Positions 6,444 through 31,443 are shown, counted from the first letter of the stretch. The stretch: DNA of 64,000 nt from Basidiobolus meristosporus CBS 931.73 (GCA_002104905.1 MCFE01000049.1:62001-126000); one strand, 5' to 3'. Notes: generated from the sequence alone by a model not told the origin. Numbers and translations: made by a program.

Positions 6444-9400
6444 TCACACTTCAATGATGTGATTTTCGTAGGAGTTCATGTCTCCCCAATAGGGATTGAC
6501 AACGACTCCTTCGAGGTCACATCTAAAAAGAGAGATATACTGGTCTTCTCCACCAACCGCCAATATTGTTCGGTGAGGATGGAATGCCACCGACGAGATG
6601 GGGACCACGCGTTGGGATAGTATGCCTGTGTAATGCCTGATCGTGCTAAGGTTGGTGCCTCCCGCATTCCAAACCTTTAAAGATTGGTTGGAGCTTCCAC
6701 TATACGAGTTGAAGTTACGTTAGCGAACAATGCTCATGGAAATCCAAGGACCACATATATCTCGTACCTAGCAAATACGGGAGCATGCTCATGCACCGCC
6801 AACGCAGTTAGTTCTTGCGTATGTGCTTCGATGGTGAAAATGGATGCTGGATGCCGAATGTCCCAAAGTTTAATATCTCCCGCTACACTGTCGCCATCCA
6901 AAAGGTTTAGTACCATCACAGTTGGATGGGGTTTCTAGAGGGGCTTACCTGCCGGAGACAAGCTCTCTATTCCCACCATGTTGCATGTGGACGTTGACAA
7001 CCCAGCCAGCATGTTCGCGCCAACACATCACCATGCTATCAATATCTGTTAATCACGCTGCGAGGAAACCCCACCGGAAGAAGTCGAACCAAACCTGTCT
7101 CTGGGTTCCAACCGCCTATCGTAGACCCGTACGGTGCCGTCGCCAAAGCCACCTACAATAATGTCTCCAGCGATTTTCTCACTTGTCAAGCTGGTGACAC
7201 AACTTCCAGACCTTGACGGTAGCTCGATAGTGCACGTTTCCCGCGCCGCATCCCAAATCTTGATGCTTTTAACATCTCCGCTTGCAAGCAAGGTTCCTCG
7301 GGATTGCTGCCAGTCCAGGATCACTCCGCTACCACGATTACTTGGGAGCATTTCTGGTAAAGCTCTCCAAGCAGATACCACCTGCATCTCATCGGAATCA
7401 TAGTTTTTGTAAACCCGGACAAGCCCGTCACTTGATCCTGTAACAAGAAGTGCGCTATCTTCCTCGTTGATGATTTTGGTCGATGTGACCGATCTACGGC
7501 TCTTCCCGTTCGCGAAATAGTTGATTCTTTGCTTAGTTTCCCAGTCCCAAACACCAATGGCACCCTTGCTGTCCGAAACTACCAAATGGTTCTCGAACTG
7601 GTGGAAAAGTAAAGAGGTTGGCTGAGAGTCGGTATACATGGTTCCTAAGGATGTCTCCCACTTGCTAGTGCCAGCATGCTCACTAAGGGGATGACTTTCG
7701 AAGATGACTTTTTCATTTCTCGTTCTGCGCCATAAGCGCTCATTGTAGTTAATGCTACCTGGCTCATCAGCTTCGGCTGGCCGCATTTGAGGCTCAGCAA
7801 AGTATTCCCGACACCAATTGTAAAAGTCTGAGCGAAGGGGAAGAGATATTCTTTCGTAGGGATCGTTTCCTCGGATGCTGGTCCCGTTTTCATCTTCCGG
7901 TCCAAATCCATCTAAGCGCGTGAAGGATTCATTTCTATGGGTGAAGGAACGTTTCATCTGGCCTTTGTGGGTGGTGTCGCTTGGGTTTCCGTTTGAAGAA
8001 AGCTCGGTTGTCGTGCCTGCCATATACCCCAGCGCCTTTAATGAGAACGAAGCGGACCGTTTTAGAGTCGAGGTGATTTTCAAACTTAACGGCCTATTTC
8101 CGTTAGTTTGCAGTCCGTTCGATAAATTTTCAGACCCAGGCGCGGTGCCGGTCATGCCATTACCAAAACCGCCACTTCCAGAGCTGTTGGGCGGAGGTAG
8201 ATGCAAAAGAGAAGATGCTGCTGCCTCGGACATGGAGGAATTGATGAGCTGATAATGTACATAGTCTACTATCTTGATAGCATGCGTGGAGACATCAACA
8301 TGGGGATCAACGGATAGATTGAGAAGGGCCTTCCAGACACACGTGTAGGCAGAGCTATGACTGGCGGAGCGGAACATATGTTCAGGAAGGCTTCTTCGAT
8401 CTGAACGGCCGCGTTGCAATATCCGTTCGTCAATGGTCTGAGATGACTGCTTCCGATCTTCTTCAACCAAGTCATAGGCGATCTGCAGGGTGATGCTTAA
8501 ATACTCGTTAACAACGCTAGAGAGGGCAATTACTAGCTCGCGACGGACCATTGGAGATCCATCGTTAGTAGTGGTCAGCATAGCAATGGCGATGTTATGC
8601 TCAATATTAACAATCTGCTCGGTCTTGTCCAAATCCCCAATAAAGAGTCCGAGAGCATAAATAGCAGCTGATCTGACTTCAGGAACGGGATCCGACAGCA
8701 ATGCGCAGAGCTTTTCGTGGGCGTTTTCGCGCACACCTAGCCATTTAGCATCGGCATAACCGGCCCACTGCTGGCCAATACATAAGCAAGACCACTGCCT
8801 TAGCAGTGGGTCTTCGTCCGTTAGGTGGGCCAGACATAGAGTAAGGACACGGCTCCTGAGGCAGGCTTCCTTTCCAGGTTGGAAATCATTGCAGAGAACA
8901 CTCAGGATGAATGTGCACATGGCACGGTGTTCGGAGATGTTGGGGATAGGCGATATCTCGTTATCAATTGTCAACACTTGCACAAAGTAGTTGTAGCCAT
9001 CGTCCTTCAAAAGGTCGTTTTGACAGGACGAGTCCACAGCCAGAATCCTGGCCCATATGAATACAAGCAATGGTTTCAAATCTGCTGCGGGACTTTGAAG
9101 GAGCTTTAAAACATAAGGGAAAATCCCGACGGCAAGTGCTAGATCTACCGCCCACGGACCAAGGTCCAGGAATTTGCAGAGCAAAATAAGTGCCCGCAGG
9201 CGATGGCCTTGACTAAGCAACACTTGGAGAAGGATGGGTAGCTGTTCAGGAGGATTTCTGGCGATAGACCCGTGGGTCAACCAAATCTCGAATGCGGTAA
9301 GCTGCTCGTTGAACAGTGTACTGGGTTTGTACTCAACCGGCGGCCCACCTTCCTCCATCGCCAACAACGCAGGCAATTGAGCCAGACACATGTCAACAGC

Positions 9401-10573
9401 AAAGTCCCAAGATTTCCAAAGCGGGTGTTGATGCGTCGATGGGAGTGGAGGCATTGACATTGGAGTACAGTTGTAAGAACGCATAATTCGATCGGCTAGC
9501 AAGAAATTTCTCAACATGGCCGCTACCATCATATCCTGCCTAAAGTATTTTTTAAAAAGATCGTGAGGAAGTACGCTCCAAGCAATTGTATCAGTGATCG
9601 CAGTAAATATCCAATTAAGCTCACCCAAAGGCGTTCTGCGATCGCTGAGTTTTCCGGGGGTTTTCAAAATCATCTCAGCATCCACATTGTTCAACAATGG
9701 ATTTTGCAAGATGAACCATTGCAAAGCGATCTGGATGGGGGTCGTTAAGCAGCAGGTAAAAAGATCTGCAGGGAGATCTGGGTTCATGGGAAGTATGTCG
9801 TTTGGACTACAGGCCGCTAGTTGTATGCAATCCGCCATCGGTGTGTAGGGAACATGGCCCAGTTTAGCGGCTTCTGAGTCACGTTGCTTAGCAAAGCGAT
9901 TGAATGACAGCAGTATATTTCCAGCAGATGAGCAATCGTAGACATACATACAAGGTGAACCAAGCCAAGATTGAAGGTCGTATAGTGTTAGAGGGATATA
10001 TTGGGTGTAGTTCTTATTGAACACCCAAATCTCACCGCTAGCAGTAGGCTTTGGAACCCCATGACCGTTGTAATGGAAAAGTACACGCTCCTCTTTAGCA
10101 TTTTTTCTCAAAGAGCCGCACAGTTTTTTGATATCTTCTACGCAAGGATCCAGCGAAAGCTTGTATCTAGCTCGTGGTTGCAGAGTTTCGTATTGCGTTT
10201 GGATGTTCCTTCCAATTGCCTCAAGAGCCTTCTGAGCAGGCAACGTAAAGGGATCAATCCACGCTTCTAGTTTGGCACAAGGATTGGTTTTGACAACGTC
10301 AGGTGGGTCTACTCCAATATTCAAGCACATCACAAGCGCGCAAGAGACAGTCTTGATTTTTTCTCGCATTCTCCAGTCATGTTCAATTATACCATGAGCA
10401 GGATGATCAGGGTTGACATTGGCGTTGTTTTCATGGCGTTTATCGGTATAATACATGTAACAAACATTTTCGTTTTTGTCTCCATCGCTCTCCTGATAAT
10501 CCCCGTTATGCACATCCGTTTGATATTGCTCCTCAAAACCGTGGCGAATAGTTTGCTCTACGGTGCTGTTCAT
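6444..10573 (-). CDS. KOG1: TORC1 subunit Raptor/Kog1 (RNC domain, HEAT repeats, WD40), ~4 exons
   Basis: RNC motifs LVMCLNIGVDPPDVVKTNPCAKLEAWIDP, ERVLFHYNGHGVPKP and PPEQLPILLQVLLSQGHRLRAL. Further WD40 exons MVMCWREHAGWVVNVHMQ, GDIKLWDIR and VAFHPHRTILAVGG; stop TGA at 6446-6444. First in-frame ATG (MNSTVEQ) at 10573. Confidence 0.97.
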
Positions 10574-10986
10574 CGTAGTCGCATGAGAATGCGTTAAAAG
10601 GCTCTTATTGTTCTTAAAGGAGAATACCAACTTTAATTTACGGTTTTTATAAAAAGCCAGCTTGGTAAATCACCACATGTAATCGTCAGTGTTCCATTAA
10701 ATATGGATATTGAATATGAGCAATCTACCATGTGAGTCTTGTGTAGAAGATAATTATGCATATTGACTTCTGGTGTTTTTCCCTGGTATCATGATCTTTA
10801 CCACGGGGTTGTATTATCATTGATATGATCATTACTACTGATTCATGGTAAACTATTTTGTTCGGAGAAGTTGATTGTTTGGATCAATCACAAATAAACA
10901 ACACGCTAAATTAAATGTGGAATCGTTGTTAGAACGCTTGTGTATCGCCGATAGAGGACTAACTGCAATATGAAGTTAAACGCTCC

Positions 10987-13900
10987 ATGGACAACTGTGA
11001 ATTATCAACTGGGCCAGTTGAAGTCGGGTTACCAAGACAATCTTCCAGAGATAGCAGAGGTACGGGAAATTCTGTTTCATGGCAATCTGGAAGATTTTGG
11101 CTGATTTTACTTGAAAGGCATGGAAGTCAGTTACTGAAAATGTTCAGCCTAACTGTTTACAAGTCTCTTGCAACGAAGCAAGTATGTAGTTGATCCCCTT
11201 TCTCTTGGGTGATATAGTTTCTTATTCATCCTACCTAGGCGCCCGTACGAAACTAGGGCCTGCAGTGAATACCTTACATAGCGGTGGCCTTGCTGGACGA
11301 CTCAAGGAGTGGTACTTTGGTGAGTGGATTGCACAACGATTAAAACTAGTTGGTGGTACATGCTGATTATGTACGTGCAGGTGTCGTATCTGAAGATTTT
11401 ACTCGATGCATTTCACCCTCTTTGTCCACATGGAGTCATAAGTCCTATGTAAGTAAGGCAGTTGGTGCCTTGCATAGCCATCCTTTCTAATGAGTTTCGA
11501 CCCTAAGCCTGAGGATGACCGAACTTTTGACGACGTCTCGCTCAACCTATTCATGGAGTTAACCAGTACACTTGTTACACGTTTTGAATTGTACTATTCA
11601 GGCTATCGCATTATCTCATTGAAGTATGCTGCATGCATTTTTGATCGCATTCCAGCGCTAACCCGTTTCCTAGTGAAAATGATGACCAGGCATTAACCAA
11701 ACTCCTACGCACCAAACTCAACTCGATTCTGCCCTCCAAATTCCAGAGAGAATGCGTTCTCTTCTTCAGAACGTGGTTTGAAAAATTCCGAAGATACGTC
11801 CGCCATCGACGTCGATTAGGACTCGGCATATGTCTGCAATGGTACGGTTACGATGAAAGATCGCCCCACACAGACCAGAACCACTCGCCGCAGCCGTCCG
11901 ATTCTGAAGACAGTGATGATGATGATGATGATGATGAGGGGCTTGTAGACGATTTTGAAAGAACTCTAGAGACCTCGAAAAAAGCTTGCGATCTTCTCTG
12001 CATCCTGGGTTTAGACCAGTTAATCGAGAATATCACTATTCCGATTCTACACGGGGAGATTGAGAAGATTGTGAACTCAAAGTGCAAAGGGGAATTCGAC
12101 CGCCCCCTGCTCTCTATCATACTCAAAGAGCTTAGCACAGTGATTCTGCCATGGCTTCGTCTCATTCTCACATGCCGAAAAGCCGATAGTAACGCCATTC
12201 ATGCTTTTCCGGAGAGAAGATAGGCACTAACCATCTCTCTTTAGATGTTGCTATGTCGATGGATTACATCAAGAGCAAGACGCGGTTAGAGTACTACATG
12301 TACAAATGCTTTAGCGACATGAGGTAATTCTGCACCCAAGCCGAAGCTTCGTGCACTTTCTTATCTTCCGTGTGTAGAATTGCCGAGCTCTTCGACATCA
12401 TCGTTGACTATCCTGACTCCGAGCCCGCACTGCACGATCTGAAAGTAAGTGCGCTCCCGAATGCATGTGCGGAAAGTTTGATTCTTATATGCTGGATAGA
12501 GCTGCATGCTGAAGGTTGACAGCCGAAGTTATCTAGTAACGAGCCTCGCCAATTCGTAAGTCGATGTCTTCAGTTGAATCTTTACGGGCTGGCTGCTGAC
12601 AAACCAACTGTTGCATGGTGTAGACTGCGGAAGCGTCTCTTGCACCCTGGTGCAAATACTTCTGATATTATTACGCAGTATGTCTCCAGCATCAAATGCC
12701 TCCGAATCCTGGATCCTCCGGGTGTCTTGATGCAAATGATCGTGGACCCCATCCGAAAGTACTTGAGGTTAGCTCTCCCGTTATGTTTGTACGCTTCTCA
12801 CGACTGAGGCTCTTTTGATGTTCGGTAGATGTCGGGAAGACACGATCCGGTGCATCATATCGGATCTGGTTGATGACACGAAGAACGAGTTGTTAGAAGA
12901 GTTGGAGCAAGGTGACGGAGTCATCATTCATGCATCTGACGACGAGGATGACGATTTCAACAACATGAATTGGGTTCCCGACCCTATCGACGCCGGACCA
13001 AGTACATGCCGATTATACTGCCGTTGATGATTGACACACTAACCGATGTGCTCGCTAGATTTCAAATCGGCCAGATCTCGTAACGCCGATATCATCAGCA
13101 TGCTCGTTAACATATACGACACGAAAGACGTGTTTGTCAAAGAGTTCCAGACCCTTCTTGCAGACCGACTTTTGTCCGTTCAGGAGTACGACACCGAGCG
13201 TGAGGTAGGCTTGTTTCGAGCATCCGTCCTCGCTATCCAGGCAACTAAGTGTCATTTAGATTCGCCATCTGGAGCTTCTCAAACTCAGGTTTGGAGAAGT
13301 CAGCCTCCAGTCGTGTGAGGTGATGATCAAAGATATAACCGACTCCAAGCGAGTTGACCATGCCATCCATGCGGATGAACGGTTCAATGAAAACGTAAGC
13401 AGCGAATGTTCCAACCCGAATTGCCCTGGTAGTTGACCCAGTTTGCTCTCTAGATCTCCATCCATGCCACTATTCTGTCCCGGCTATTCTGGCCGAACTT
13501 CCGATCGGAAGATGTTTACCTCCCTGCGGAGTTCACAGAGTACGTGCCTTGACGCGCCTGGCTGGCTCATTGCTTTGGTACTCACTGGGTATTTCCTCGA
13601 CAGGCAATTGGCGGCGTACGAATCAACCTTTGAGAAGCTAAAACCCTCCAGAAAGCTGATCTGGTTGAATCACCTGGGAACAGTCGACTTGGAGCTGGAG
13701 TTGAAAGATAGGACTCTTGCGTTGAATGTGTCACCCGCTTATGCGGCGATCATATGGCACTTCCAGGACAAAGGTACCGAAAGATGCTTTAAAGCGTACA
13801 GTCGACATCAGGTCAGAGAATTGATCCAATCCACCCCATCCTATACTAGACACCTGGGAGCTTGCGGAGCTAGCACAGGAGCTGCAGTCTACGCCCAACA

Positions 13901-14334
13901 ACGTAAAGCGAAAGCTGATGTACTGGATCGGGCTAGGTGTCATCAAGGAGCATCCCTCTGAGGTCTACTCTGTAGTAGAGGAGGCGGAGGAGCTGCCGGC
14001 CGAGAGTAAGTATCTTCGCGGGTTTCCCAGAGTCATTGTCTTAACCTGGTGTTTGCGTCTAGTTGAAAATATTGAAGAGACGGTGTCTTCCTCTGTTCAA
14101 TCCGCCAAGGAACAACAGGCAGAGGAGATGCGTATATACTGGTCGTATATTGTCGGAATGTTGACCAACTTGGGAACACTGCCCCTCGACCGAGTTCAGT
14201 CGATGCTGTCCATGTTTGTGCAGGCGCCTAATAAGTACAACAGAAGCGCGGAGGAGCTTCAGGATTTCCTGGAATTGATGATCCGCGAGGACAAATTAGA
14301 GTTTTCGTTAGGGATGTACAAGTTGAAAAAATAA
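10987..14334 (+). CDS. APC2: Anaphase-promoting complex subunit 2 (cullin-like), many short introns; start uncertain
   Basis: Exons encode ELFDIIVDYPDSEPALHDL, RLLHPGANTSDIITQYVSSIKCLRILDPPGV, WVPDPIDAGP, DIISMLVNIYDTKDVFVKEFQTLLADRLL, LKPSRKLIWLNHLGTVDLELEL and the winged-helix YWSYIVGMLTNLGTLPLDRVQSMLSMF. Upstream exons can be traced back to ~11 kb. Confidence 0.9.
11915..11935 (+). repeat. (GAT)7 microsatellite encoding poly-Asp in APC2
   Basis: Seven perfect GAT units in frame within an APC2 exon. Confidence 0.85.
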
Positions 14335-14852
14335 GTGACTAGATCTATTTGCCTACCCTGTATTTGTGTATTATCCCATTCTCGAGATTGTATAGTATGT
14401 GCTACATCCATATCCACATTCACATTCACATTAAACTACATAGCGTACTTGACTGCTGCTCCTTGACTGTATTGCCGAGCTGACACAGGGTTTCCCCGCT
14501 GCTTGGGCCCTGATTGGTGGCTTGGGTTTATGCACCTTCTTGATGCTTGCTGGAAATCGGAGCTCAGCCGATAAGCAACCATGTGTTAGAGTTAGTCCCA
14601 CAGAAATCTACGTTCAGCTCCCCTAACAACGTTTGCGATTGACTCGTGTGTAAGGCCTAACACTCCCCGCTAGTATGGATATTGGCAAATACACCAATCT
14701 GCCGGACGTCCTGAAACGAAACAGTCGTGCGTATACATTGAGTGGTGCTTGAAACGAAGGCACCCTTTATTTTTTCGACCCTTTCTTACACTGGGGATGG
14801 TATTCCTTTCGTTGACAACCCCGTCTCAGCTGTGAGAAATAACTGGACCGAG

Positions 14853-16099
14853 ATGTTCCCTCCCGCAAAGCTGACCGCCCTCCGCGTAGGTACTGCAGGA
14901 TTGCTTTTAGCTATGGTATTGACCCGGAATTAACGGAAATACAGACAAAGGACGCGCCAGATTCACTCCAATTCTTACAAAACGTACTGTCAGAGGTTCG
15001 AAAGCTCCTCCCGAGTTGACCGTCCCCCTCGTTGACGTAGCCGAAAGAGAAGCGAGGTCTTTCCCCTCACTCTCGGAGAAACCTCAGGATGGTGCAGAGC
15101 ATTTGAATAGAACCTCATTATCTACTTTGCGCTCATGCCCTAGTTTTATCAAGCCTCAGATAACCGGGTAGGGATTCCTGAAGAAGGCAACAGTATGGCT
15201 ACGGAAAACCTCCAAAATGCCATTGGCGTTTCTGAGTCATTCCTCCCCAACCCAAATGAAAAGCGAGAGCCTGTGGTGCTTTCTACTTTGGCAGGCAACA
15301 CAGGGCCTACCAATCGAGTCATAAATGCACAGGATATACAGTTCTCTCCACAGTTAAACGAAGTGGGTGGGGATGCCGCCAAGATTGCCGATAGGAACCA
15401 GCCACATCAATCACCTCAATTCACTCCGATGTTTGCTTTTTGTGAGAAGGGGCTTGGTAGATATGAAGATCGGGCCAGAAACAGAGAAACATCCAGGCCT
15501 TCAAGGAAATCGAAGCTGAGCCGGAGTTATGCTCGCAGCCCACTAAAGAGTGTTGCACGGCCAACTCGCGAGGACAAGAATCCTCCCTCTTCAGCAATGC
15601 CGCAGGAATGGTACCACATTACCTGTACTCTTGTGTGAATCTCCTTTAACCAAGGATCTCTAGCCATTTTGCTCCGCAGATGCGAGTTGTTGATGGGAAA
15701 CTTGCTCTCGACAACTTGTCTCTAAGTGTGGACCTGCACTGCCTGAGTGGTCAACAAGGAGGAGTGCCTCTGGATGTTGTGGATGAATCGACATCTGAAC
15801 GCTTTATAAATAGCGCCACTTATCTCTCGAAGATCAAATCCCAGAGATGGACCCAGAGCGAAACAGACCTGTTTTATGAGGTAGTGAGGTATGCAGAGTT
15901 GCAACTAAGCTTGCGTAACTCACATAATCCTATCTAGGGAATAGCGAAGTGGGGTACGGATTTTGACCTGATTGCATCCATGTTTCCACATCGTACCCGG
16001 AAGCACATCAAGTACAAATTCAAGAAAGAAGAAAGAGTAAATCCGGCACGCATCACTGATGCGGTAATCAGGCGTTGCTCTGGAGTTGGTGTAGAATGA
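14853..16099 (+). CDS. BDP1: RNA polymerase III factor TFIIIB subunit Bdp1 (SANT domain); 3' end uncertain (alternative splice ends ~16186)
   Basis: Spliced N-terminus [41 protein letters not shown]...RFINSATY, then SANT domain [14 protein letters not shown] / [41 protein letters not shown]. Confidence 0.88.
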
Positions 16100-17575
16100 T
16101 GGCTGAAGGGTACCGTTCCTTTCCAGAATGAGTATTTAACCTCAGTTACCATCAGATACTTGGCAATTCAATACAATGCAGAATAGATGGTTTACTTCTG
16201 AGGTGTAATGATGCATCAAATGTTCTTTGAATCCTTCAACTTTTTGTATTTGACACTACCCGTTGCTGATTAAGCAATGTTTGTCATTGGCGTAGTTTAG
16301 CACTGAGGGTTTTGTTGTCTCTCAATACTAAACAAAAGGCTATCACTATTCTGAGGGGGTTGACCATTTTTGCATTTATGGATTTTGTGGTTGCCTTGCT
16401 GATGTGCAACTGAACCTACATCAGCTGCTAAAATTGTATTAACTTTTGCACCTGTAGGACACACTTATGCCCCTCACTTTGCCATATTCTTCAGGATCCT
16501 ATGGATACTCCCCCATAGAGGAATAAATTTTCACTTCTATCAAATGCAATGCTCCAACTCTAAGACCTAAATATTGTACACCTGAGGGTGGAAATGTACT
16601 TCTGTTACAAGCTTAACAACATTCTCATTTTCCCTCTGGCTCATTAAACATATCACATTGGACCACAATAGGCCATTGCAAGCAATCTTCAGCTACTAAC
16701 ATTGATTGGGTATAGTCATATAATTGCTCTAATAGTTAAGATTCAAACTACTTTGTTTGCTGATAAGCATCTTGCTTTGGCACCATAAATAAGCAGCACT
16801 TGGAATAAAGCTATTTATGAGATGGCACAGCAAGCATTCAGCCAATTGAATGAGACTAAGTCAAATCAGGTGGTAGAGCTGGTGTTATGGATGATTTATA
16901 CACCTACAGAAGATTTATTAACTGTGAGTTTTGCCTCAAATACAAGGCTAACTTGCTATTATAAATATGACTTGCTCAAAAGTTATGCATCATCAGGATC
17001 ATGCTGGTTCAGTGCACCCCACAGCAATTGCATCAAAGCCTCCTTGGTTTTTTCTCACAAGAAGCACTACCAAAACATCTTGTAGAGCTTCACTTTGTAC
17101 ACTAGACTACTCCCCTGCTAACCATCATTCAGACTACCTGTGTACTTGTATTCATTATTCTGAATGCCAACTGTAGAGTGTGGTGTTCTGGTCTGGTAGT
17201 GGTGAATAGCCCTAGAATAGATGGTGTACCCAGCATCAAAGCAGTGCATTGGCCTTTTATTCAGTCAAGATTTTTCATGACAATTGCCCCAAGGCTGCTT
17301 TTGATTGGTTCTCTTAAATTTATCTTACTTTCTGATCCTGAAAACTCAATCATCTACTATATCTGTGTACATTGATTGTCTATTGCCTCTTTTTCACACT
17401 CCTTACTTCCTGGCTCAGCCAATGCTCATACTATTCATGCATTCTACTTGGTTCATTTTCATTGAATCTTCAGTTGTAACTTAATCATAGATTGTACTAT
17501 ACATTTATTGTCCAAACAGCCCCTAAATGTGCATACATGCTCTTTGGACCTTCTTATACCCCTATGAAATATTAT

Positions 17576-18412
17576 TGTTATGATCCTGTCAAAAGGCCAT
17601 CACAGACTTAAAGTCCTGTGACTAAGAGGTATTGATCCCATTGTTGCAAGAGTCTTGGAGATATTGGAAGTGATTGGGAGAACAAGTAGATTTTGTGGTT
17701 TTCACTTAATGATTTATTGAATGTAAAAGTAGTATTTATACTTTTACCTGGTCTTGGCATTACAAACACATAGAATAGGTTAAGGAAGGTCCCAAGAACA
17801 TGTGTGCAAATTTTGGGGCTGTTTGGACAACTTTGAGAATTTTCATGTTCTGGGTAAATATTCTAAGTAAATCCCAACAAGGAATTTGGTCAGTATTCTC
17901 TAGGATTTGAAGGTGATGATCTAAGTGACTAAATTAGGTGAATATTTAGGTGGAAATACAAATTTTTACAACACCCATCAGGACACTGTGCAAAGACTGT
18001 CAAAAAATTATTGCACTCCAGATTCACAAAAAACTCAGTCAAAATTTTTCATCACTGCAATACAATGGTGACTTTTGATTGGTTCTGATCCTAGATACTC
18101 TATCACCTCCTACATTGGTGTGAATTAATTGGCTATTGCCTCTTTTTCACACTCTTTACTTCCTGGTTTGCTGCCGGTTTTCTCACTCTCTGATTCTGGT
18201 CACTCTATCACCTCCTACATTTGTGTGCATTGATTGAATATTGCCTCTTTTCACACTCCTTACTTCCTGACTCAAGCATTTCTGTTACTTTTCATATGTA
18301 CAAATTGATTTATTTCTGTTGAAACTTCAGTTGTACCTCATTTGCCAATTTTATTGACCTATACAAGTCCCTTTACCCTACACTAACATTAAGCCAAACC
18401 CCACACTCAACA
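17576..18412 (+). mobile_element. Solo LTR, family B (TGTTATGATCCTG...CTCAACA), with a nested LTR-A and an internal ~105-bp tandem duplication
   Basis: TG...CA termini; homologous to 33029-33444. Duplicated unit ACTCTATCACCTCCTACATT...TTACTTCCTG at ~18096 and ~18201. An older related fragment lies at ~17290-17500. Confidence 0.65.
17642..17973 (-). mobile_element. Solo LTR of Copia family A
   Basis: Reverse complement of the LTR at 25756-26104; perfect 5-bp TSD CCCAT (17637-17641 and 17974-17978). Confidence 0.9.
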
Positions 18413-18594
18413 GACTTGTTCCGTTGGATAGTGCCACATAGTGCCAGCCGGTTTATAGTGCCGGATTGATCTGGCACTCTACGGCACTATCTGGCACTAT
18501 AATTTCTACCATGATGCCAGTGGTATGATACAGTTACTGGTAATTTTACTCAATCTTACTTATGTTGCTCAGAATAGTGCTTTCCTTGCTTTAT

Positions 18595-19479
18595 TTACTC
18601 TTCATAATGCTCCAGACACATTTCTCTCAGTGGATGTCTTCTTGTATGAACATACTGTGCATTGATAAGTATCTTAACTATTTTACCTATTCTGCTGTTT
18701 TCTCCTATATATGACTTTCCTCTGTATTTACCTGCCAATATGCTGAATCTCTTCAGATATCCAAATGTGTGCTCTACCCTTACTCTGAAATGATTAAATA
18801 TCTCATTGTAGAGCTTCTGCTTCCTGCTAAGCACACCATTCCTTGGCTTCCTATAAGCTGTAATACATCCTAATCTCTGACAATCCTCTCCTATATAGGC
18901 CAAGTCTGCCATACATTTCTCCCCTCTACTGAATTCAGGATGATTCTCTACCCAGAGTGCTTTGTCATGCCTACTTCCAGCAAATGGCCCACTAAACCAG
19001 ATGATGTTACCCTCAATGTCAGACAGTGCTTGAAACTTCACACAGTGTGCCTTGTACTTGCCAGAATAAAAGTGCCTCTGCCCTCTAGAAGGTCTGTTAA
19101 TCCTCACTGGGAAGGTATCCAAAATACTCCTGATATGGAACCTGTTGCTGAACACTCTGGGATATGGAAGTCTATTGGAGCTTCTGAACCTAGTATTCCA
19201 AGCTTGCTCTAAGTCATTCATACCCTCTGCAAGGTGGTTCTCCATTGCTGTCAGCTGGGAATGAAAGCTTCTAGGACTTTTGTTGCCATGGATAGTGGGA
19301 TGAAACCTTGTAGGGCAATAGTTCTTGTAATAGCAGAGAAGCTTAACAAGGGATCTCCTTGAGTAGATTGGGGTTGATGGTCCACAGTACTTGGAATAGA
19401 TCTCCTCCAGTGTGTCAAAAGGAAATCCAGTGGTAGTGATGGGATTGATGAGAAAAGACCATTCAGATGAGTAAGTCAT
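18595..19479 (-). CDS. DDE_Tnp_4-type (Harbinger/ISL2EU/IS5-like) transposase, 294 aa
   Basis: ILDTFPVRINRP...FYSGKYKAHCVKFQALSD...SGPFAGSRHD...MADLAYIG...RVRVEHTFGYLKRFSIL, with catalytic D, D and E in the expected order. Confidence 0.9.
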   Translation of the reverse strand: MTYSSEWSFLINPITTTGFPFDTLEEIYSKYCGPSTPIYSRRSLVKLLCYYKNYCPTRFHPTIHGNKSPRSFHSQLTAMENHLAEGMNDLEQAWNTRFRSSNRLPYPRVFSNRFHIRSILDTFPVRINRPSRGQRHFYSGKYKAHCVKFQALSDIEGNIIWFSGPFAGSRHDKALWVENHPEFSRGEKCMADLAYIGEDCQRLGCITAYRKPRNGVLSRKQKLYNEIFNHFRVRVEHTFGYLKRFSILAGKYRGKSYIGENSRIGKIVKILINAQYVHTRRHPLREMCLEHYEE

Positions 19480-19838
19480 ATTAAAATTGATGGATGATCG
19501 TATGGAGGCGGTTTGAATTGATTCGGCGCGATCTGCGTTATTTATCTGATTTTTAACACATTATGGTTAAATCTCCATCAATTGCCATGTATCCCATCAT
19601 TATGTCGCAAAAATCATCCGCAAACAATGCCTTGGTACTTTTATTGATGCTTTAATCATAGGTCTATAATCAAATAGGAAATCTGCGATTGATGTGATCT
19701 GATCCGTGTCAACGCGATCCGAGATGCATCATGCATAATATATGGAAAATTCAACAATCACTTTAGTTTTCATATATATTTCATATAAGACCAGGTTGAT
19801 GCCAATATACTGCTGTATAAGTATTCAAATCCGTTGCT

Positions 19839-21110
19839 ATGGTCCCCATACCAAGCCTCAACTCATCTTTAGTACAACCCAGACAAAACCCATCCCCCAG
19901 CTCACTAGCACGGTCCGGACCGGAGAAGTCAATGTCGGATCCGTTCGAGTTCTCGCCAAATGATTTTAGTATGGCCCAAGTGTCTATGATGAGCCTTCAT
20001 ACAGATATTTGGGCACTACTGATTAATCTAGCAGAACTAGATACCTCAGAGAGTCAACAAAGATGGAAGAATTTGAGTAGAAAGCTGTGGCATGAGTTCT
20101 ACATCAAGATGCCAGCCAATGTATGTAAAAAGATATATAACAAGACAAGTATTGAAATCAAGAATGAGCTGAGAGTGAGGGGATTTGAGGAGGAAGCCGC
20201 GCGGGAACGATTTCGCGCGCAATTTGCGCAGTACGGGCCGGACGCATCCGTTCGTGCCTCAACTTTGGGAACCAAAGAGATTTTGAATGAGTTTTTGCCT
20301 CAAATGACTAATGTACTACGTGATATATTAGTAGAGCTAAGTGGCTTCCAAGAGCAATATACACAGGACTCATCCAGGCAACAGCTCCAAAGTATCAGAC
20401 AGAGGGTAAGTGAATACCTTGAGGAATCAGATGGTGAGCTTCAGGAGGAAGAATACAGACCGCGAGCAACATCGTCCAGATTGCGCCAGCACGCCTTGCT
20501 GGATTCCCTACCATCTCTTGCAACCACAGCGCGCCGGCGCACGTCAGTCCAGACCGCGCCAACACCCTTTACCAGAACGCCCCGCGTTGAGTCAACGCGC
20601 ATTGAGTCAACGCGCATCGGGTCAACGCGCGCGCTTCAGAGCAAAACTACCAGAACTCGCCAAACTGCTCATTTAGACACAAGTCCATTGGAGCGGACCA
20701 AGTTGCGTCAACATGCGGCATCACATCAAACTCAGCCAAGGGCCATCTCAACGCGTCAAGGCGCGCCTGCGCGTGCCGTTTTGCCTGACCATCAGCAAGT
20801 TACTTCTGGTGAACTGACTGATGATGACCAACATGAAGTGACTCAACCACCGGAGCCCTTGGCAAGTAAAAGAACGCGTCAGCGCGTGGCACTACAGGCC
20901 GGTTCAGTTGGTTCAGTTGGTTCAGTCGGAGCAATTCAGCGCGGCCAAGCTGCAGCATTGCACTCATCAACTAGGAGGCAAAATACTGACTACAAATACA
21001 CAAGTAGCCAAGATGATAGTCAGCCAGGAAGTAGTATAGGTGTGCAAAGTGAGTCACTACCAAATGCTTCAGTAGTAATCCCTGTGAGAAAAAAACCCAG
21101 GAGAAGATGA
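19839..21110 (+). CDS. Transposon ORF2: putative Myb/SANT-like (trihelix) DNA-binding protein with low-complexity R/S/T/Q tail and C-terminal NLS
   Basis: 423-aa ORF conserved in both copies. QRWKNLSRKLWHEFYIKMPANVCKKIYNK resembles the Myb-like helix pattern of Harbinger ORF2 proteins; ends RKKPRRR. Domain call is inference. Confidence 0.7.
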   Translation: MVPIPSLNSSLVQPRQNPSPSSLARSGPEKSMSDPFEFSPNDFSMAQVSMMSLHTDIWALLINLAELDTSESQQRWKNLSRKLWHEFYIKMPANVCKKIYNKTSIEIKNELRVRGFEEEAARERFRAQFAQYGPDASVRASTLGTKEILNEFLPQMTNVLRDILVELSGFQEQYTQDSSRQQLQSIRQRVSEYLEESDGELQEEEYRPRATSSRLRQHALLDSLPSLATTARRRTSVQTAPTPFTRTPRVESTRIESTRIGSTRALQSKTTRTRQTAHLDTSPLERTKLRQHAASHQTQPRAISTRQGAPARAVLPDHQQVTSGELTDDDQHEVTQPPEPLASKRTRQRVALQAGSVGSVGSVGAIQRGQAAALHSSTRRQNTDYKYTSSQDDSQPGSSIGVQSESLPNASVVIPVRKKPRRR

Positions 21111-21856
21111 TGCAATTGCTTTGAATCGCTCACATTTGTAATGATCCCAACAACCCTTTTTTTTTGCGATCCAAATTGAGCCATTGCAAATCAGTGATCA
21201 TCAAATTTTTGATATAAGTAATATCAAGGTCGTCTCACATTTGAGACAGAACCCCTATAAATAAACACCCTGCATATATATACGTCATCTGTAATACCAG
21301 TGCAGCTATTGGATCTGTTTTGCACCTACACGATTGCTTGCGTGCTAGCTATGACACCTTGCCCAATCACTAGGATCAGGGATTTACTTGCTCAATGGGC
21401 AAAATGGGATATTTGATGGCAAATCAGGTAGCTTTTTCAGTAGTCAATGAGCCAATTGGGGGCTGCCAGCTTCAGGATACTTTTGGACCAATTAACCACT
21501 GAGATACCGTCCAATTGGAGTGAGGGTAACCAAAATGGTAAGTATCAGTGTAGTTTATAGTGTGATACACATTTATTTCCATTTACATTAAAGAAACATA
21601 TCCAAATACCAGATTTTACCTGCCATTATAGCGGTATCCGATCACGCACGTGATGCAAGCATTACAAGTTGGCGCGATCATCCGCGCCAACCTCATCGTG
21701 TCAGATTGTGCCATAGTGTGCGAGATCGTCCCGCATAGTGCGAAATCGTCCAAGAACAATCCTGCCTTCTGGTAGCTATAATATTGCGCCCGATCGTTCT
21801 TTGCAACCGCGGATTGCGCCGCGTGCCCTGGCACGGTACGATGGAACAAGTCTAAC

Positions 21857-25755: not shown

Positions 25756-28042
25756 TGTTGTAAAAATTTGTATTTCCACCTAAATATTCACCTAACTCAG
25801 TCACTTAGATCATCACCTTCAAATCCTAGAAAATACTGACCAAATTCCTTGTTGGGATTTACTTAGAATATTTTCACCAAAATACCAGGTACCCAGAACA
25901 TGAAAATTCTCAAAGTTGTCCAAACAGCCCCAAACTTTGCACACATGTTCTTGGGACCTTCCTTAACCTATTCTATGTGTTTGTAATGCCAAGACCAGGT
26001 AAAAGTATAAATACTACTTTTACATTCAATAAATCATTAAGTGAAAACCACATAATCTACTTGTTCTCCCAATCACTTCCAATATCTCCAAGACTCTTAC
26101 AACAGGTTATGAGCCCCAAGCAGTCACTCTCTGCAATGTCTACTACGGCTATTACTGGAATTTTTCCCTCTGCAGAAAAGTTGGATGGATCTAACTACCA
26201 AGTGTGGAAGGTGAAGATGAAGATGCTGCTACGAGAAAGAGGCCTTTGGGATATTGTCATGGGAGAAGAATGCCCTCCTAAAAACATGGGAGAGGAAGCC
26301 TTGAAGTACCAGAAGAAAGAACAAATTGCCTTTAACTGCATTTGCCTTAATGTCAAGGACAAATTGCTAATTCAATGCTCAAGAGCAAAAACGGCAAAGA
26401 ATGCCTGGAAGGCATTAGAAGACACCTACCAGTCATGTTCAGCTGCCAAGAAAATGTATCTGAGAAGAAAATTCTTTACTACAAAGATGCTGCCAGGAGA
26501 AGAAATGAAAAATCTAACAGCGCGCAACCCTAACCCTAATTCTGATCCCGCCCATCAAAAATCACCCAAAAATCTCAAAAATTGAAATTTGGAGCTGAAA
26601 CTCTGGATATGCCACCAAAACCTCAACAGGAGCCCACTACACCTGAAAGGAAGGTTCTTGATTGCTTTGACAAGTCTGTCAAGAAGATTTCTTGCCCCAA
26701 CTGTGGAAACAAAGGAACTATCAGAAGGAATGGAAGAGCTAGAGAAAAATCTAATCAACAGAATTACCCTGCTGGTAGATGAGATGGAATCGGTGGGCGT
26801 ACCAACTACTGATGAGGATGTGATAGTTACCATCCTGAATAGCCTGACAGATGAGTTTCAGGGCCTTGTATCAGCCCTAGAGTCCAGAACTGAAGATTTG
26901 ACCTTAAATTACGTATATGGAAGGCTCCTGGATGAAGAATTAAGAAAATCAAGTTCCAATTAAGAAGGTTTTCATGGGTGACAATAGAACACTTGATGCA
27001 GTGGGAGAAGGAACTATCCAAGTAAACCTTAGAAGCAGTGAAGGAAGCCATACACTGACCTTTAAAGAAGTACTCTATGTACCAGAAATAGCCAAGAACC
27101 TACTCTCTGTAAGCAAGGCCACAGCAGAAGGACTCAGTTTCAGTTTTGACAATTTTGGATGCAGGATCACCGATCAAAATGGTGCTCATATTGCTTTGGG
27201 CATCAGAGATCAGAATCTATACAAGTTGACTTATATTCCATCATATCTAGAAGCCAATATAAGTAACTTAAATGAAGAAACACCAATGCTTTGGCACAGG
27301 AGATTTGGACACATCAATTTTGATTATTTGCGTAAAATGATCAAAGATCAGCTAATTTCTGGAGTGAAAATTGATCCCCCAGCTATTTTGGAGCACTGTG
27401 AAGCCTGCATATATGGGAAACAAGCCAGACAACCGTTCAAGAGCTCTGGGTTAATCAAAAATAAGAAAAAATTAGATCTAATTCACTCAGATCTGTGTGG
27501 AACTATGCAAAAATTATCCTTAGGCGGGATGAAGTATTTAATCACTTTTATTGATGATTATACAAGATACACATGGGTCTACTTCATGGAGAGAAAGGAA
27601 GAAGCTCTGTCTAAGTTCAGGGAGTTTAAAGCCATGGTGGAGAGAGAAACTGGTGAAAAAATCAAGAAAATACGCTCTGACAATGGTGGAGAATATACCT
27701 CCAAACTCTTCATCCACTTCTGCAAAATTCATGGGATAAAGCAAGAGACTACTGAACCATACTCCCCACAACAAAATGGAGTAGCAGAATCAGCTAACAG
27801 ATCAATAATTGATATGGCAAGATCTATGATCCATGATCAAAAATTATCCTATGATTTTTGGGCGGAATCAGTTGCCACTGCTGTATATCTTAAAATAGGA
27901 GTTATAACAGAATACTTTGTGATTCTACTCCATTTGAAGCATGGTATGGATACAGACCAAGTGCAGAACATCTAAGAATATTTGGGTGTACAGCATATGC
28001 CAAAAAACTGGCCGGAAATCAGTCAAAATTTGAGCCAAAAAA
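25756..28042 (+). mobile_element. Ty1/Copia family A, 5' part (LTR 25756-26104, PBS, gag, partial pol); defective
   Basis: PBS GGTTATGAGCCC at 26105. gag EKLDGSNYQVWKVKMKMLL; integrase LWHRRFGH, CEACIYGKQ, IHSDLCG, IRSDNGGEY, QQNGVAE. Zinc knuckle and protease DSG motif are deleted between ELRKSSSN and KKVFMGDN; RT, RH and 3' LTR are absent. Confidence 0.9.
26518..26743 (+). other. 226-bp foreign insertion in Copia gag between 11-bp direct repeats
   Basis: GAAAAATCTAA at 26507-26517 and 26744-26754; removing the insert restores gag (GEEMKNLINRITLLVDEME). The insert has AACCCTAACCCTAA and the ORF MPPKPQQ...SCPNCGNKGTIRRNG. Confidence 0.85.
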
Positions 28043-28224
28043 GACTTGTTCCGTGGGATAGTGCGACATAGTGCCAGCCGGTTTATAGTGCTGGATCAAT
28101 CTGGCACTCTACGGCACTATCTGGCACTATAATTTCTACCATGATGCCAGTGGTATGATACAGTTACTGGTAATTTTACTCAATCTTACTTATGTTGCTC
28201 AGAATAGTGCTTTCCTTGCTTTAT

Positions 28225-29109
28225 TTACTCTTCATAATGCTCCAGACACATTTCTCTCAGTGGATGTCTTCTTGTATGAACATACTGTGCATTGATAAGT
28301 ATCTTAACTATTTTACCTATTCTGCTGTTTTCTCCTATATATGACTTTCCTCTGTATTTACCTGCCAATATGCTGAATCTCTTCAGATATCCAAATGTGT
28401 GCTCTACCCTTACTCTGAAATGATTAAATATCTCATTGTAGAGCTTCTGCTTCCTGCTAAGCACACCATTCCTTGGCTTCCTATAAGCTGTAATACATCC
28501 TAATCTCTGACAATCCTCTCCTATATAGGCCAAGTCTGCCATACATTTCTCCCCTCTACTGAATTCAGGATGATTCTCTACCCAGAGTGCTTTGTCATGC
28601 CTACTTCCAGCAAATGGCCCACTAAACCAGATGATGTTACCCTCAATGTCAGACAGTGCTTGAAACTTCACACAGTGTGCCTTGTACTTGCCAGAATAAA
28701 AGTGCCTCTGCCCTCTAGAAGGTCTGTTAATCCTCACTGGGAAGGTATCCAAAATACTCCTGATATGGAACCTGTTGCTGAACACTCTGGGATATGGAAG
28801 TCTATTGGAGCTTCTGAACCTAGTATTCCAAGCTTGCTCTAAGTCATTCATACCCTCTGCAAGGTGGTTCTCCATTGCTGTCAGCTGGGAATGAAAGCTT
28901 CTAGGACTTTTGTTGCTATGGATGGTGGGATGAAACCTTGTAGGGCAATAGTTCTTGTAATAGCAGTGAAGCTTAACAAGGGATCTCCTTGAGTAGATTG
29001 GGGTTGATGGTCCACAGTACTTGGAATAGATCTCCTCCAGTGTGTCAAAAGGAAATCCAGTGGTAGTGATGGGATTGATGAGAAAAGACCATTCAGATGA
29101 GTAAGTCAT
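28225..29109 (-). CDS. DDE_Tnp_4-type transposase, copy 2
   Basis: 294 aa, nearly identical to 18595-19479. Confidence 0.9.
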   Translation of the reverse strand: MTYSSEWSFLINPITTTGFPFDTLEEIYSKYCGPSTPIYSRRSLVKLHCYYKNYCPTRFHPTIHSNKSPRSFHSQLTAMENHLAEGMNDLEQAWNTRFRSSNRLPYPRVFSNRFHIRSILDTFPVRINRPSRGQRHFYSGKYKAHCVKFQALSDIEGNIIWFSGPFAGSRHDKALWVENHPEFSRGEKCMADLAYIGEDCQRLGCITAYRKPRNGVLSRKQKLYNEIFNHFRVRVEHTFGYLKRFSILAGKYRGKSYIGENSRIGKIVKILINAQYVHTRRHPLREMCLEHYEE

Positions 29110-29467
29110 ATTAAAATTGATGGATGATTGTATGGAGGCGGTTTGAATTGATTCGGCGCGATCTGCGTTATTTATCTGATTTTTAACACATTATGGTTAA
29201 ATCTCCATCAATTGCCATGTATCCCATCATTATGTTGCAAAAATCATTCGCAAACAATGCCTTGGTACTTTTATTGATGCCTTAATCATAGGTCTATAAT
29301 CAAATAGGAAATCTGCAATTGATGTGATCTGATCCGTGTCAACGCAATCCAAGATGCATCATGCATAATATATGGAAATTCAACAATCACTTTAGTTTTC
29401 ATATATATTTCATATAAGACCAGGTTGATGCCAATATACTGCTGTATAAGTATCCAAATCCGTTGCT

Positions 29468-30700
29468 ATGGTCCCCATACCAAGCCTCAACTCATCTTTA
29501 GTACAACCCAGACAAAACCCATCCCCCAGCTCACAAGCGTGGTCCAGACCGGAAAAGTTGATGTCAGATCCGTTTGAGTTCTCGCCAAATGATTTTAGTA
29601 TGGCCCAAGTGTCTATGATGAGCCTTCATACAGATATTTGGGCACTACTAATTAATCTAGCAGAACTAGATACCTCAGAGAGTCAACAAAGATGGAAGAA
29701 TTTGAGTAGAAAGCTGTGGCATGAGTTCTACATCAAGATGCCAGCCAATGTATGTAAAAAGATATATAACAAGACAAGTATTGAAATCAAGAATGAGCTG
29801 AGAGTGAGGGGATTTGACGAGGAAGCTGCACGGGAACGATTTCGCGTGCAATTTGCACAGTTCAGGCCGGACGCGTCCGTTCGTGCCTCAACTTTGGGAA
29901 CCAAAGAGATTTTGAATGAGTTTTTGCCTCAAATGACTAATGTACTACGTGATATATTAGTAGAGCTAAGTGGCTTCCGAGAGCAATATACACAGGACTC
30001 ATCCAGGCAACAGCTCCAAAGTATCAGACAGAGGGTAAGTGAATACCTTGAGGAATCAGATGGTGAGCTTCAGGAGGAAGAATACAGACCGCAAACAACA
30101 TTGTCCAGATTGCGCCAGCATGCCTTGCTGGATTCCCTACCATCTCTTGCAACCACAGCGCGCCGGTGCACGTCAGTCCAGACCACGCCAAGCACCCTTT
30201 ACCAGAACGCCCCGCGTCGAGTCAACGCGTGCGCTTCAGAGCAAAACTACCAGAACTTGCCAAACTGCTCATTTAGACACAAGTCCATTGGAGCGGACGA
30301 GTTGCGTCAACATGCGGCATCACATCAAACTCAGCCAAGGGCCATCTCAACGCGTCAAGGCGCGCCTGCGCGTGCCGTTTTGGCTGACCATCAGCAAGTT
30401 ACTTCTGGTGAACTGACTGATGATGACCAACATGAAGTGCCTCAACCACCGGAGCCCTTGGCAAGTAAAAGAACGCGTCAGCGCGTGGCGCTACAGGCCG
30501 GTTCAGTTGGTTCAGTTGGAGCAATTCAGCGCGGCCAAGCTGCAGCATCACACTCATCAACTAGGAGGCAAAATACTGACTACAAATACACAAGTAGCCA
30601 AGATGATAGTCAGCCAGGAAGTAGTATAGGTGTGCAAAGTGAGTCACTACCAAATGCTTCAGTAGTAATCCCTGTGAGAAAAAAACCCAGGAGAAGATGA
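29468..30700 (+). CDS. Transposon ORF2, copy 2 (410 aa, internal compensating frameshifts)
   Basis: Near-identical to 19839-21110 apart from a frame-shifted middle segment and repeat-unit losses. Confidence 0.7.
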   Translation: MVPIPSLNSSLVQPRQNPSPSSQAWSRPEKLMSDPFEFSPNDFSMAQVSMMSLHTDIWALLINLAELDTSESQQRWKNLSRKLWHEFYIKMPANVCKKIYNKTSIEIKNELRVRGFDEEAARERFRVQFAQFRPDASVRASTLGTKEILNEFLPQMTNVLRDILVELSGFREQYTQDSSRQQLQSIRQRVSEYLEESDGELQEEEYRPQTTLSRLRQHALLDSLPSLATTARRCTSVQTTPSTLYQNAPRRVNACASEQNYQNLPNCSFRHKSIGADELRQHAASHQTQPRAISTRQGAPARAVLADHQQVTSGELTDDDQHEVPQPPEPLASKRTRQRVALQAGSVGSVGAIQRGQAAASHSSTRRQNTDYKYTSSQDDSQPGSSIGVQSESLPNASVVIPVRKKPRRR

Positions 30701-31443
30701 TGCAATTGCTTTGAATTGCTCACATTTGTAATGATCCCGACAACCCTTTTTTTTTGCGATCCAAATCAAGCCATCGCAAATCAGTGATCATCAAATTTTT
30801 GATATAAGTAATATCAAGGTTGTCTCACATTTGAGACAGAACCCCTATAAATAAACACCCTGCATATATATACGTCATCTGTAATACCAGTGCAGCTATT
30901 GGATCTGTTTTGCACCTACACAATTGCTTGCGTACTAGCTATGACACCTTGTCTAATCACTAGGATCAGGGATTTACTTGCTCAATGGGCAAAATGGGAT
31001 ATTTGATGGCAAATCAGGTAGCTTTTTCAGTAGTCTATGAGCCAATTGGGGGCTGCCAGCTTCAGGATACTTTTGGACCAATTAACCACTGAGATACCGT
31101 CTAATTGGAGTGAGGGTAACCAAAATGGTAAGTATCAGTGTAGTTTATAGTCTGATACACATTTATTTCCATTTACATTAAAGAAACATATCCAAATACC
31201 AGATTTTACCTGCCATTATAGCGGTATCCGATTGCGCACGTGATGCAAACATTACAAGTTGGCGCAATCATCCGTGCCAACCTCATTGTGTCAGATTGTG
31301 CTATAGTGTGCAAGATTGTCCCGCATAGTGTGAAATTGTCCAAGAACAATCCTGCCTTCTGGTAGCTAGGATATCGCGCCCAATTGCTCTTTACAACCGC
31401 AGATCACGCCGCGCGCCCTGGCACAGTACGATGGAACAAGTCT

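Follow-up and report, generated by a model that had tools for sequence, protein, structure and literature searches.

A CpG-free transposase gene beside ancestral CpG-dense patches in a PIF/Harbinger transposon of Basidiobolus meristosporus

In mammals, young copies of L1, with the CpG island of its 5′ untranslated region (5′UTR), and of Alu combine CpG-rich regulatory sequence with CpG-poor coding sequence, and their CpG decays after insertion. In maize, the activity of Spm/En, with its upstream and downstream control regions (UCR and DCR) and TnpA, and of Ac, with its subterminal AAACGG, is governed by the methylation state of GC/CpG-rich regions or sites. Here we describe a PIF/Harbinger DNA transposon of Basidiobolus meristosporus CBS 931.73 in which a transposase gene devoid of CpG lies beside patches that are very dense in it. 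The element lies in the window analysed here, a stretch of 64,000 nucleotides (GCA_002104905.1, MCFE01000049.1:62001-126000) from whose first letter all positions are counted. The CpG-dense patches are ancestral, have been retained in the lineage that transposes and decay rapidly in inserted copies. With moderate confidence we read them as exposed regulatory or unconstrained sequence that stays intact only in source copies, and not as an anti-silencing device. The family was read base by base in two full copies and two fragments, and the figures given below for the genome's other copies come from a comparison of contig pieces among the matches listed.

The element under study, copy 1, combines a DDE_Tnp_4 transposase carrying a DDE triad with terminal inverted repeats (TIRs) and a 3-bp target site duplication (TSD), and is an intact, autonomous DNA transposon of the PIF/Harbinger type, from a family that is young and very high in copy number. 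Its parts, including two open reading frames (ORFs), and two related miniature inverted-repeat transposable elements (MITEs) are as follows.

18412-21853: copy 1, autonomous PIF/Harbinger element of 3,442 bp; identity with copy 2 begins and ends exactly here
18412-18422, plus strand: left TIR AGACTTGTTCC, 11 bp; its exact reverse complement forms the right TIR at 21843-21853
18428-18500: left subterminal repeats ATAGTGCC / GGCACTAT, five copies, common to the MITEs and to contig L001 of a sister family
18595-19479, minus strand: transposase ORF, 294 amino acids, DDE_Tnp_4, catalytic triad kept
19839-21110, plus strand: ORF2, 423 amino acids, an orphan, divergent from the transposase
43652-44385: fold-back MITE of 734 bp with the same TIRs, TSD AAT, 4 CpG
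53157-53890: second fold-back MITE of 734 bp with the same TIRs, TSD ATT, 1 CpG

The transposase matched PF13359 (DDE_Tnp_4) with E = 8.7e-24, and its residues D121, D192 and E236 were invariant in an alignment with nine relatives; a search by exact protein returned no record of it. Copy 1 is flanked by the TSD AAC (18409-18411 and 21854-21856), the 3-bp flanks being identical. The TIR AGACTTGTTCC also occurs on the MITEs, and part of it is present on L001. Both MITEs consist of two left-type element ends and carry the ATAGTGCC repeats; in copy 1 the left subterminal repeat region (18428-18500) holds four CpG, every one in a CCG/CGG context. The family is very abundant in this genome's DNA runs, with about 23,000 contig pieces matched, and the element was found in no RNA run; another isolate under the same species label yielded only relatives at 85-90% identity.

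The CpG mosaic of copy 1 is exact and far above chance. A recount reproduced every count by segment given in the initial annotation, which had singled out this contrast. The CpG-bearing parts outside the left end are as follows.

19480-19955: divergent intergenic region and 5′ part of ORF2; CpG in short clusters with CpG-free gaps between
20196-20256, plus strand: patch A, 13 CpG; low-confidence linker; 4 of 4 Arg codons CGN
20458-20945, plus strand: patch B, 44 CpG, in the ORF2 frame; Arg codons 17 CGN, 5 AGR
21630-21853: right subterminal CpG patch, with 8-mers in common with patch B and the promoter

The transposase ORF (18595-19479) has 0 CpG in 885 bp, where 38.6 would be expected from base composition, and the uninterrupted CpG-free run spans 18483-19498 (about 1,016 bp); at the element's own CpG rate the chance of a 1-kb gap is P ~4e-15. 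The ORF2 part at 19956-20195 is likewise without CpG. By observed/expected ratio (o/e), CpG stands at 1.9 in patch A (13 CpG in 61 bp), 1.11 in patch B (488 bp, GC 57%), 1.45 at the right end (24 CpG in 224 bp, GC 54%) and 1.27 in the intergenic region 19480-19838 (14 CpG); tight clusters within 19480-19955 lie at 19499-19536, 19686-19720 and 19911-19954. Both patch B and the right end have the length (≥200 bp), GC content (≥50%) and o/e (≥0.6) by which CpG islands are defined in sequence. Further segments, beyond those of the initial annotation, extend the alternation: 20257-20457 has a single CpG, 20946-21110 has none, and 21111-21629 is intermediate with an o/e of 0.36.

The surroundings supplied a host background and a young retrotransposon, with long terminal repeats (LTRs), as a control.

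1-16000: host genes, namely Raptor (a single 1,193-amino-acid ORF), a Vta1-like gene, a FYVE gene and a cullin fragment
58574-63513, plus strand: Gypsy control, very young, with an intact 1,377-amino-acid gag-pol ORF and identical LTRs

CpG o/e is 0.83 in the host genes at 1-16000 and, with both young Harbinger copies excluded, 0.088 in the debris of transposable elements (TEs; Copia, Gypsy and MITEs) at 16000-64000, where TpG and CpA are over-represented. How much CpG remains in the debris depends on its neighbours: o/e is highest, about 0.2, where these are G/C and lowest, about 0.03, where they are A/T. The young Gypsy, whose LTRs are identical over 370 bp and which has TG...CA ends and an apparent TSD TTAT, shows a uniform o/e of 0.18-0.20 in LTR and ORF alike; because it is depleted throughout, the mosaic is not a general pattern for active elements here, and the finding keeps its interest. 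The four CpG-poor segments of copy 1 together hold one CpG in 1,638 bp, for which P = 8e-5 at the young Gypsy rate (o/e 0.18) and P = 0.02 at that of long-dead TE debris (o/e 0.088). B. meristosporus is listed as carrying a CDCA7-type protein, a factor that almost always co-occurs with DNMT1 or DNMT5 (PMC10538959). The compartment border is itself abrupt, CpG o/e falling from about 0.83 in the host genes to about 0.09 in the TE-rich rest of the window within 15500-16500.

The fate of patch CpG after insertion could be followed in a second full copy.

28042-31443: copy 2, 96.3% identical; transposase intact, 99.3% identical

Copy 2 differs from copy 1 mostly by CpG to TpG/CpA changes. Of 124 ancestral CpG sites, 12% were lost in copy 1 and 34% in copy 2; the other 3,153 aligned sites diverge by 0.92%, and the transposases differ at 3 of 885 positions. 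From the copy 1/copy 2 counts we estimate that CpG is lost about 30-60-fold faster per site than other sites. The loss graded with the flanking bases, W being A/T and S being G/C: across copies 1 and 2 it reached 56% for WW, 34% for SW and 24% for SS. Among the genome's copies, C>T or G>A accounted for 122 of the 182 variable places, and aligned depth dipped in CpG-dense bins. At the copy 1 CpGs 19687, 19716, 19954 and 20253 a decayed base was found in 80-88% of depth; since sites decaying independently would end up partly as TG and partly as CA, majorities of this size mean that masters already lacking these sites still amplified. Lasting protection of the element by its patches was therefore not borne out, given the 34% loss of ancestral CpG in copy 2 and the 122 of 182 variable places. 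A VANC-type system would be expected to leave copies free of methylation-type decay, and copy 2, with 34% CpG loss against 0.9% elsewhere, does not look like that. As to its setting, the 3-bp flanks of copy 2 (left AAA, right ATT) do not match and form no TSD; a Copia integrase ORF borders it on the left, and an old decayed family fragment begins about 235 bp past its right end, an arrangement that suggests nesting or recombination between copies.

Two old fragments of the family give the patches a time depth.

31678-31985, plus strand: old dead ORF2 fragment, matching 20313-20675; patch CpGs decayed to TG/CA
17020-17210, minus strand: second old fragment, ORF2 tail and 3′ region

At the 26 alignable young-copy CpG positions the fragment 31678-31985 reads TG/CA at 24 and CG at none; decayed TCAACGCG tandem units are included, and its non-CpG divergence is 18%. 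Decayed forms of patch A, patch B and the promoter cluster were also seen among the genome's copies. Because decayed CpG remnants exist in the old fragment and in these copies, the patches are ancestral and retained; the recent capture that the initial annotation had named as a counter-case was looked for and did not hold. At the young-copy rate, a lineage exposed for even half the fragment's time would keep <1% of its CpG, and the young lineage kept at least 92%. In the transposing lineage, patch CpGs thus compared changed no faster than ordinary sites. The earlier claim that the patches must be protected or selected accordingly stood for the transposing lineage (TG/CA at 24 of 26 positions in a fragment with 18% non-CpG divergence) and fell for inserted copies, where CpG decays about 30-60-fold faster than other sites. 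Relatives from the second isolate align within patch A and the patch B part 20597-20826, and gave no alignment at ≥85% for the patch B parts 20482-20596 and 20827-20941. BLAST with C>T- or G>A-collapsed sequence seemed to extend the old fragments, and its long hits proved to be noise in a four-way alignment, where homology was confined to 20313-20680 and about 20931-21359.

The lack of CpG in the transposase gene is just as persistent and extends over two families. A sister family is known from one 1,250-bp contig, L001, which encodes P0001, the closest relative of the copy 1 transposase, at 62% amino acid identity; a metagenome scan for sister-family loci found no relative. L001 has the ATAGTGCC repeats and the TIR start in common with copy 1, and its ORF has 1 CpG (o/e 0.03) between flanks at o/e 1.0 and 0.53. 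At 4-fold sites shared by the two ORFs 61% differ, so that synonymous sites are saturated. Both ORFs nevertheless leave about 146 synonymous CpG opportunities practically unused, and with one exception their Arg codons are AGR. In other hosts, relatives at 42-43% identity show an ORF o/e of 0.83-0.85; since these are CpG-normal and both sister ORFs depleted, the depletion is a product of this host environment and has been continuously maintained. Codon usage was considered as a cause and ruled out, as CpG across codon boundaries is absent too and host genes use CGN freely.

The two families also share a short stretch upstream of the transposase, although their upstream regions are otherwise poorly alignable.

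19525-19545, minus strand: conserved promoter block ATAAATA-N5-GATCGCGCC, on the transposase strand, about 45 nt upstream of the ATG

With identical spacing, the block recurs in copy 2 at 29155 and in L001 at 127-147, 41 nt from the ATG, and it includes GCGCGATC. A shared GATCGCGCC 9-mer alone would not be rare by chance (P ~0.24); for the whole block, in which ATAAATA keeps its exact spacing and the ATG lies at a comparable distance, we estimate about 1e-5 from the sequence lengths. ATAAATA-N5-GATCGCGCC looks like a putative core-promoter block, and its conservation across saturated synonymous divergence argues that this block, at least, has been held by selection.

The second gene, ORF2, carries the mosaic within one reading frame: two helical parts are CpG-free, and the linker and a long Arg/Thr/Ser/Ala-rich stretch are CpG-dense. 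No Pfam match was obtained, word searches with residues 30-205 of the full ORF and with the 176-amino-acid piece alone found no homologue, and an atlas search returned a score of 0.76. A single-sequence AlphaFold2 model is all-helical with a predicted local distance difference test (pLDDT) of 64, with confident helices in the CpG-free parts and a linker of low confidence that coincides exactly with patch A; against the PDB, Foldseek matched nothing beyond generic helical bundles. Neither these Pfam, homologue and atlas searches nor Foldseek detected a DNA-binding domain, and the divergent ORFs adjoining L003, a relative at 42%, showed no similarity to ORF2. Across patch B the ORF2 frame has no stop and the other frames have 3 and 9, and patch B is probably translated as an Arg/Thr/Ser/Ala-rich low-complexity region. 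CpG shows no codon-phase bias (24/23/18). Arg codons divide sharply: AGR in 28 of 28 cases in the transposase and exclusively in the ORF2 cores (4 in the N-terminal part, 19956-20195, and 6 in the C-terminal tail, 20946-21110), with 21 CGN and 5 AGR in patches A and B and 40 CGN and 25 AGR in the host Raptor gene.

Several details of ORF2 deserve mention in their own right. Splice-donor-like GTAAGT (20406-20411) and GTGAGC (20434-20440) lie just 5′ of patch B, and in-frame acceptor-like CAG occurs at 20939 and 20955; the old fragment reads GCAAGT in place of GTAAGT. A putative intron of 534 nt would excise patch B, and such an intron (GTAAGT at 20406 to TTCAG at 20939, in frame) is unlikely given zero stops and the frame-preserving indels between copies. 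Relative to positions 20562 and 20698, copy 2 has +1 and -1 indels 136 bp apart within patch B, as well as 30-bp and 9-bp tandem-unit deletions, and together these restore the ORF2 frame downstream. At 20055-20056, in a CpG-free domain, copy 1 reads CA, and in about 35-40% of aligned depth the first position is T and the second G, as if an ancestral CpG had decayed both ways in different subfamilies.

The CpG-rich parts share short words, and the positions reported earlier for TCAACGCG, the palindrome and GCGCGATC were all correct. TCAACGCG occurs at 19709, 20592, 20607, 20622 and 20748 and, reversed, at 20583 (6 against 0.08 expected in CpG-rich DNA); GCGCGATC lies at 19526 in the promoter and 21672 at the right end; and a 15-bp palindrome at 20584 is imperfect in copy 2. 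Much of the TCAACGCG signal comes from one repeat.

20583-20633, plus strand: 15-bp tandem with TCAACGCG, three units and one inverted arm; one unit in copy 2, decayed units in the old fragment

The recurrence has to be qualified because three of the copies are units of this tandem, of which copy 2 has a single one. With the tandem collapsed, nine 8-mers were still present at least three times against 0.78 in simulations of CpG-rich segments, and 67 8-mers were repeated against 34 expected. The promoter TCAACGCG reads TCAACGCA, one CpG site having decayed, in about 80% of aligned depth across copies, and what autonomous copies, MITEs and the sister family have in common as a subterminal repeat is ATAGTGCC rather than TCAACGCG. 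We also noted AACGCG(T) and TTTCGCGC, which look like candidate MluI-cell-cycle-box (MCB) and E2F G1/S sites; such words lie at 20211-20218, 20750-20756, 20873-20879 and 21668-21690 (TTTCGCGC, and AACGCGT twice), with a hairpin-like TTGGCGCG-N6-CGCGCCAA among them.

Put together, these observations show two regimes within the transposing lineage; for their cause we offer an account whose prospects we judge about evenly balanced. The host genome would hypermutate CpG to TpG/CpA in repeats, most likely through deamination of 5-methylcytosine (5mC). A CpG-free end state, in which any new CpG is lost, would have been reached by the transposase ORF with its UTRs and by the folded parts of ORF2, and new subfamilies would be founded only by copies with surviving genes. 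The promoter, the termini and the two low-constraint GC-rich stretches of ORF2 would carry CpG at the level of unmethylated host DNA, stable in the transposing lineage and decaying some 30-60 times faster after insertion and silencing. Source copies would thus not be exposed in their regulatory and GC-rich low-constraint parts, the promoter block would be selected, and the cores would be kept CpG-free by loss and sorting. Here we infer 5mC as the cause, an unmethylated state of the source-copy patches, and lineage sorting as what keeps the ORFs CpG-free. Low constraint in the patches agrees with the low-pLDDT linker at patch A, with the indels and changes in tandem number in patch B and with the even spread of CpG over codon phases.

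Several points weigh against this account. It leaves unexplained what purged CpG from the ORFs of the very source copies whose patches were spared: in unmethylated source copies synonymous CpG should re-accumulate in the ORF, and in methylated ones neutral patch CpG should vanish. The young Gypsy is uniformly depleted, LTR included, so that active TEs here do not as a rule have a promoter CpG island, and its o/e of 0.18-0.20 means that coding constraint alone does not give zero CpG. Patch o/e (1.1-1.9) is above that of host genes, as is the frequency of GCGC, 2.9 times the expected one, and the recurrence of short CpG words across patches above chance hints at selected motifs and not at neutral DNA.

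In a tentative alternative, the clusters would be selected, methylation-sensitive cis-control modules; the element would be off when methylated and its CpG-free genes would survive dormancy. The modules could, with the same limited probability, be sites for host factors or for the element's own proteins and act as a CpG-island-like switch, by analogy with the Spm UCR and DCR or the Ac sites. Retention of patch CpG at or below the background rate in the transposing lineage, the GATCGCGCC block conserved across saturated synonymous divergence, the tight intergenic clusters amid CpG-free DNA, the island-like composition of the patches and the words recurring in promoter, patch B and right end (nine 8-mers at least three times against 0.78, and 67 repeated against 34) are all what such modules would lead one to see, as are the candidate MCB- and E2F-like words. 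Yet the patch CpGs 19687, 19716, 19954 and 20253 are gone from about 80-88% of depth and masters without them amplified well. MITEs with two left-type ends and 1-4 CpG moved without patches, which counts against a role in transposition itself, and about 100 CpGs without codon-phase bias are much for selection to hold. Scattered CpG of the fast-decaying type kept in the 3′ region also counts against a universal purge. A stronger version, which we consider rather doubtful, would make the whole mosaic an architecture evolved under CpG-directed genome defence: genes recoded to be CpG-free, which methylation and its mutagenesis cannot touch, thousands of silenced copies serving as a gene reservoir, and CpG modules in promoter, ORF2 and right end as methylation-sensitive switches, preserved in source copies alone.

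That the parts differ in age seems unlikely. The GC-rich patches (A, B and the right end) would then have joined later than the purged cores, by capture of unmethylated host DNA or expansion of GC-rich repeats, and would have had too little time or exposure to decay in the master lineage. The Arg codons of patches A and B are indeed host-like (21 CGN to 5 AGR, with 40 to 25 in Raptor) and those of the cores AGR only, the 15-bp and 9-bp patch tandems vary between copies, and 20482-20596 and 20827-20941 stay unaligned at ≥85% in second-isolate relatives. Patch A and the patch B part 20597-20826 do align there, however, and the patches are older than the old fragment with its 18% non-CpG divergence, tandem units and the junction between 20257-20457 and patch B included; the sister family already has CpG-bearing flanks around a CpG-free ORF, and no patch donor was found within the window, the only DNA searched.

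Very unlikely, in our estimate, is a homology- or RNA-directed methylation that hits only cores near-identical to older copies and lets the patches of a fresh master escape, mismatched as they are to the decayed pool. It would draw both regimes from one mechanism, and dead copies are about 99% identical in the transposase and divergent at up to one site in eleven in the patches; beyond this the proposal proceeds by inference. Burst siblings are identical over their full length, so patches would be recognised too, the 61-bp alternation at patch A is fine-grained for such targeting, and no sign of RNA- or pairing-directed methylation in this organism was found in this analysis. Least probable of all is the reading of the initial annotation that ORF2 binds TCAACGCG-type CpG motifs and senses or counters methylation in the manner of VANC: TCAACGCG recurrence is real (6 against 0.08), ORF2 is element-encoded and uncharacterised, and patch CpG is retained in the transposing lineage, but inserted copies decay heavily and so gain no lasting protection, three of the six TCAACGCG copies are one tandem inside the ORF2 coding sequence with one unit in copy 2, the promoter TCAACGCG is lost in most copies and the palindrome imperfect in copy 2, ATAGTGCC and not TCAACGCG is common to MITEs and the sister family, and no DNA-binding domain or family similarity was detected in ORF2.

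Copy 1 offers a clean natural contrast of two evolutionary regimes inside one transposon. Three things thereby become measurable: how strongly CpG-directed defence mutates the repeats of an early-diverging, fungus-like genome, the identity of the source copies, and whether TE genes gain immunity to such defence merely by lacking its substrate. If the clusters are indeed methylation-sensitive control regions, epigenetic self-regulation of the Spm/Ac type would extend from plants to a fungal Harbinger. A limited literature search found no fungal transposon described as combining CpG-dense modules with a transposase gene free of CpG.

Among described systems, VANC of VANDAL21, HDP1/HDP2 and ALP1 resemble copy 1 in having an element-encoded accessory protein and motif arrays; ORF2 differs in that family and homologue searches found no similarity to VANC or any known anti-silencing factor and no homology was detected, that copies decay at CpG like other TE DNA, and that the arrays are largely a coding tandem. 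Some fungal DNA transposons carry TET/JBP genes, a counter-measure against 5mC (PMC12730594). With such transposons and with RIP-like, CpG-targeted hypermutation in fungi (RIP, repeat-induced point mutation), the common ground is a defence that marks and mutates C in repeats. As differences, mutation here falls on CpG, preferentially with W flanks, and copy 1 has no TET/JBP-like gene, its apparent adaptation being the lack of a substrate in its genes and not removal of the mark.

Within PIF/Harbinger (PHIS) elements, copy 1 is at home by its DDE_Tnp_4 transposase with intact triad, short TIRs and 3-bp TSD, and by its divergent second ORF, short subterminal repeats and Tourist-like MITEs with the same TIRs. 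It departs from them in a short transposase (294 amino acids, as in its nearest relatives at 276-296), in TSDs of AAC, AAT and ATT where TWA is usual, and in a second ORF without a recognisable Myb/SANT domain. With Spm and Ac it shares being a DNA transposon with GC/CpG-rich candidate control regions, a functional analogy that is speculative, and ORF2 is unrelated in sequence to TnpA. Compared with L1, copy 1 is a cut-and-paste DNA transposon in a fungus-like genome, its coding cores have literally zero CpG, its dense patches are found within a coding frame and at one end of the element as well, and a co-resident young Gypsy has no island. In the contrast of CpG-rich regulatory with CpG-poor coding sequence, in fast decay after insertion and in the keeping of CpG by source copies only, the behaviour of the patches nonetheless appears closest, by analogy, to the CpG-island 5′UTR of mammalian L1 and to CpG decay in Alu.

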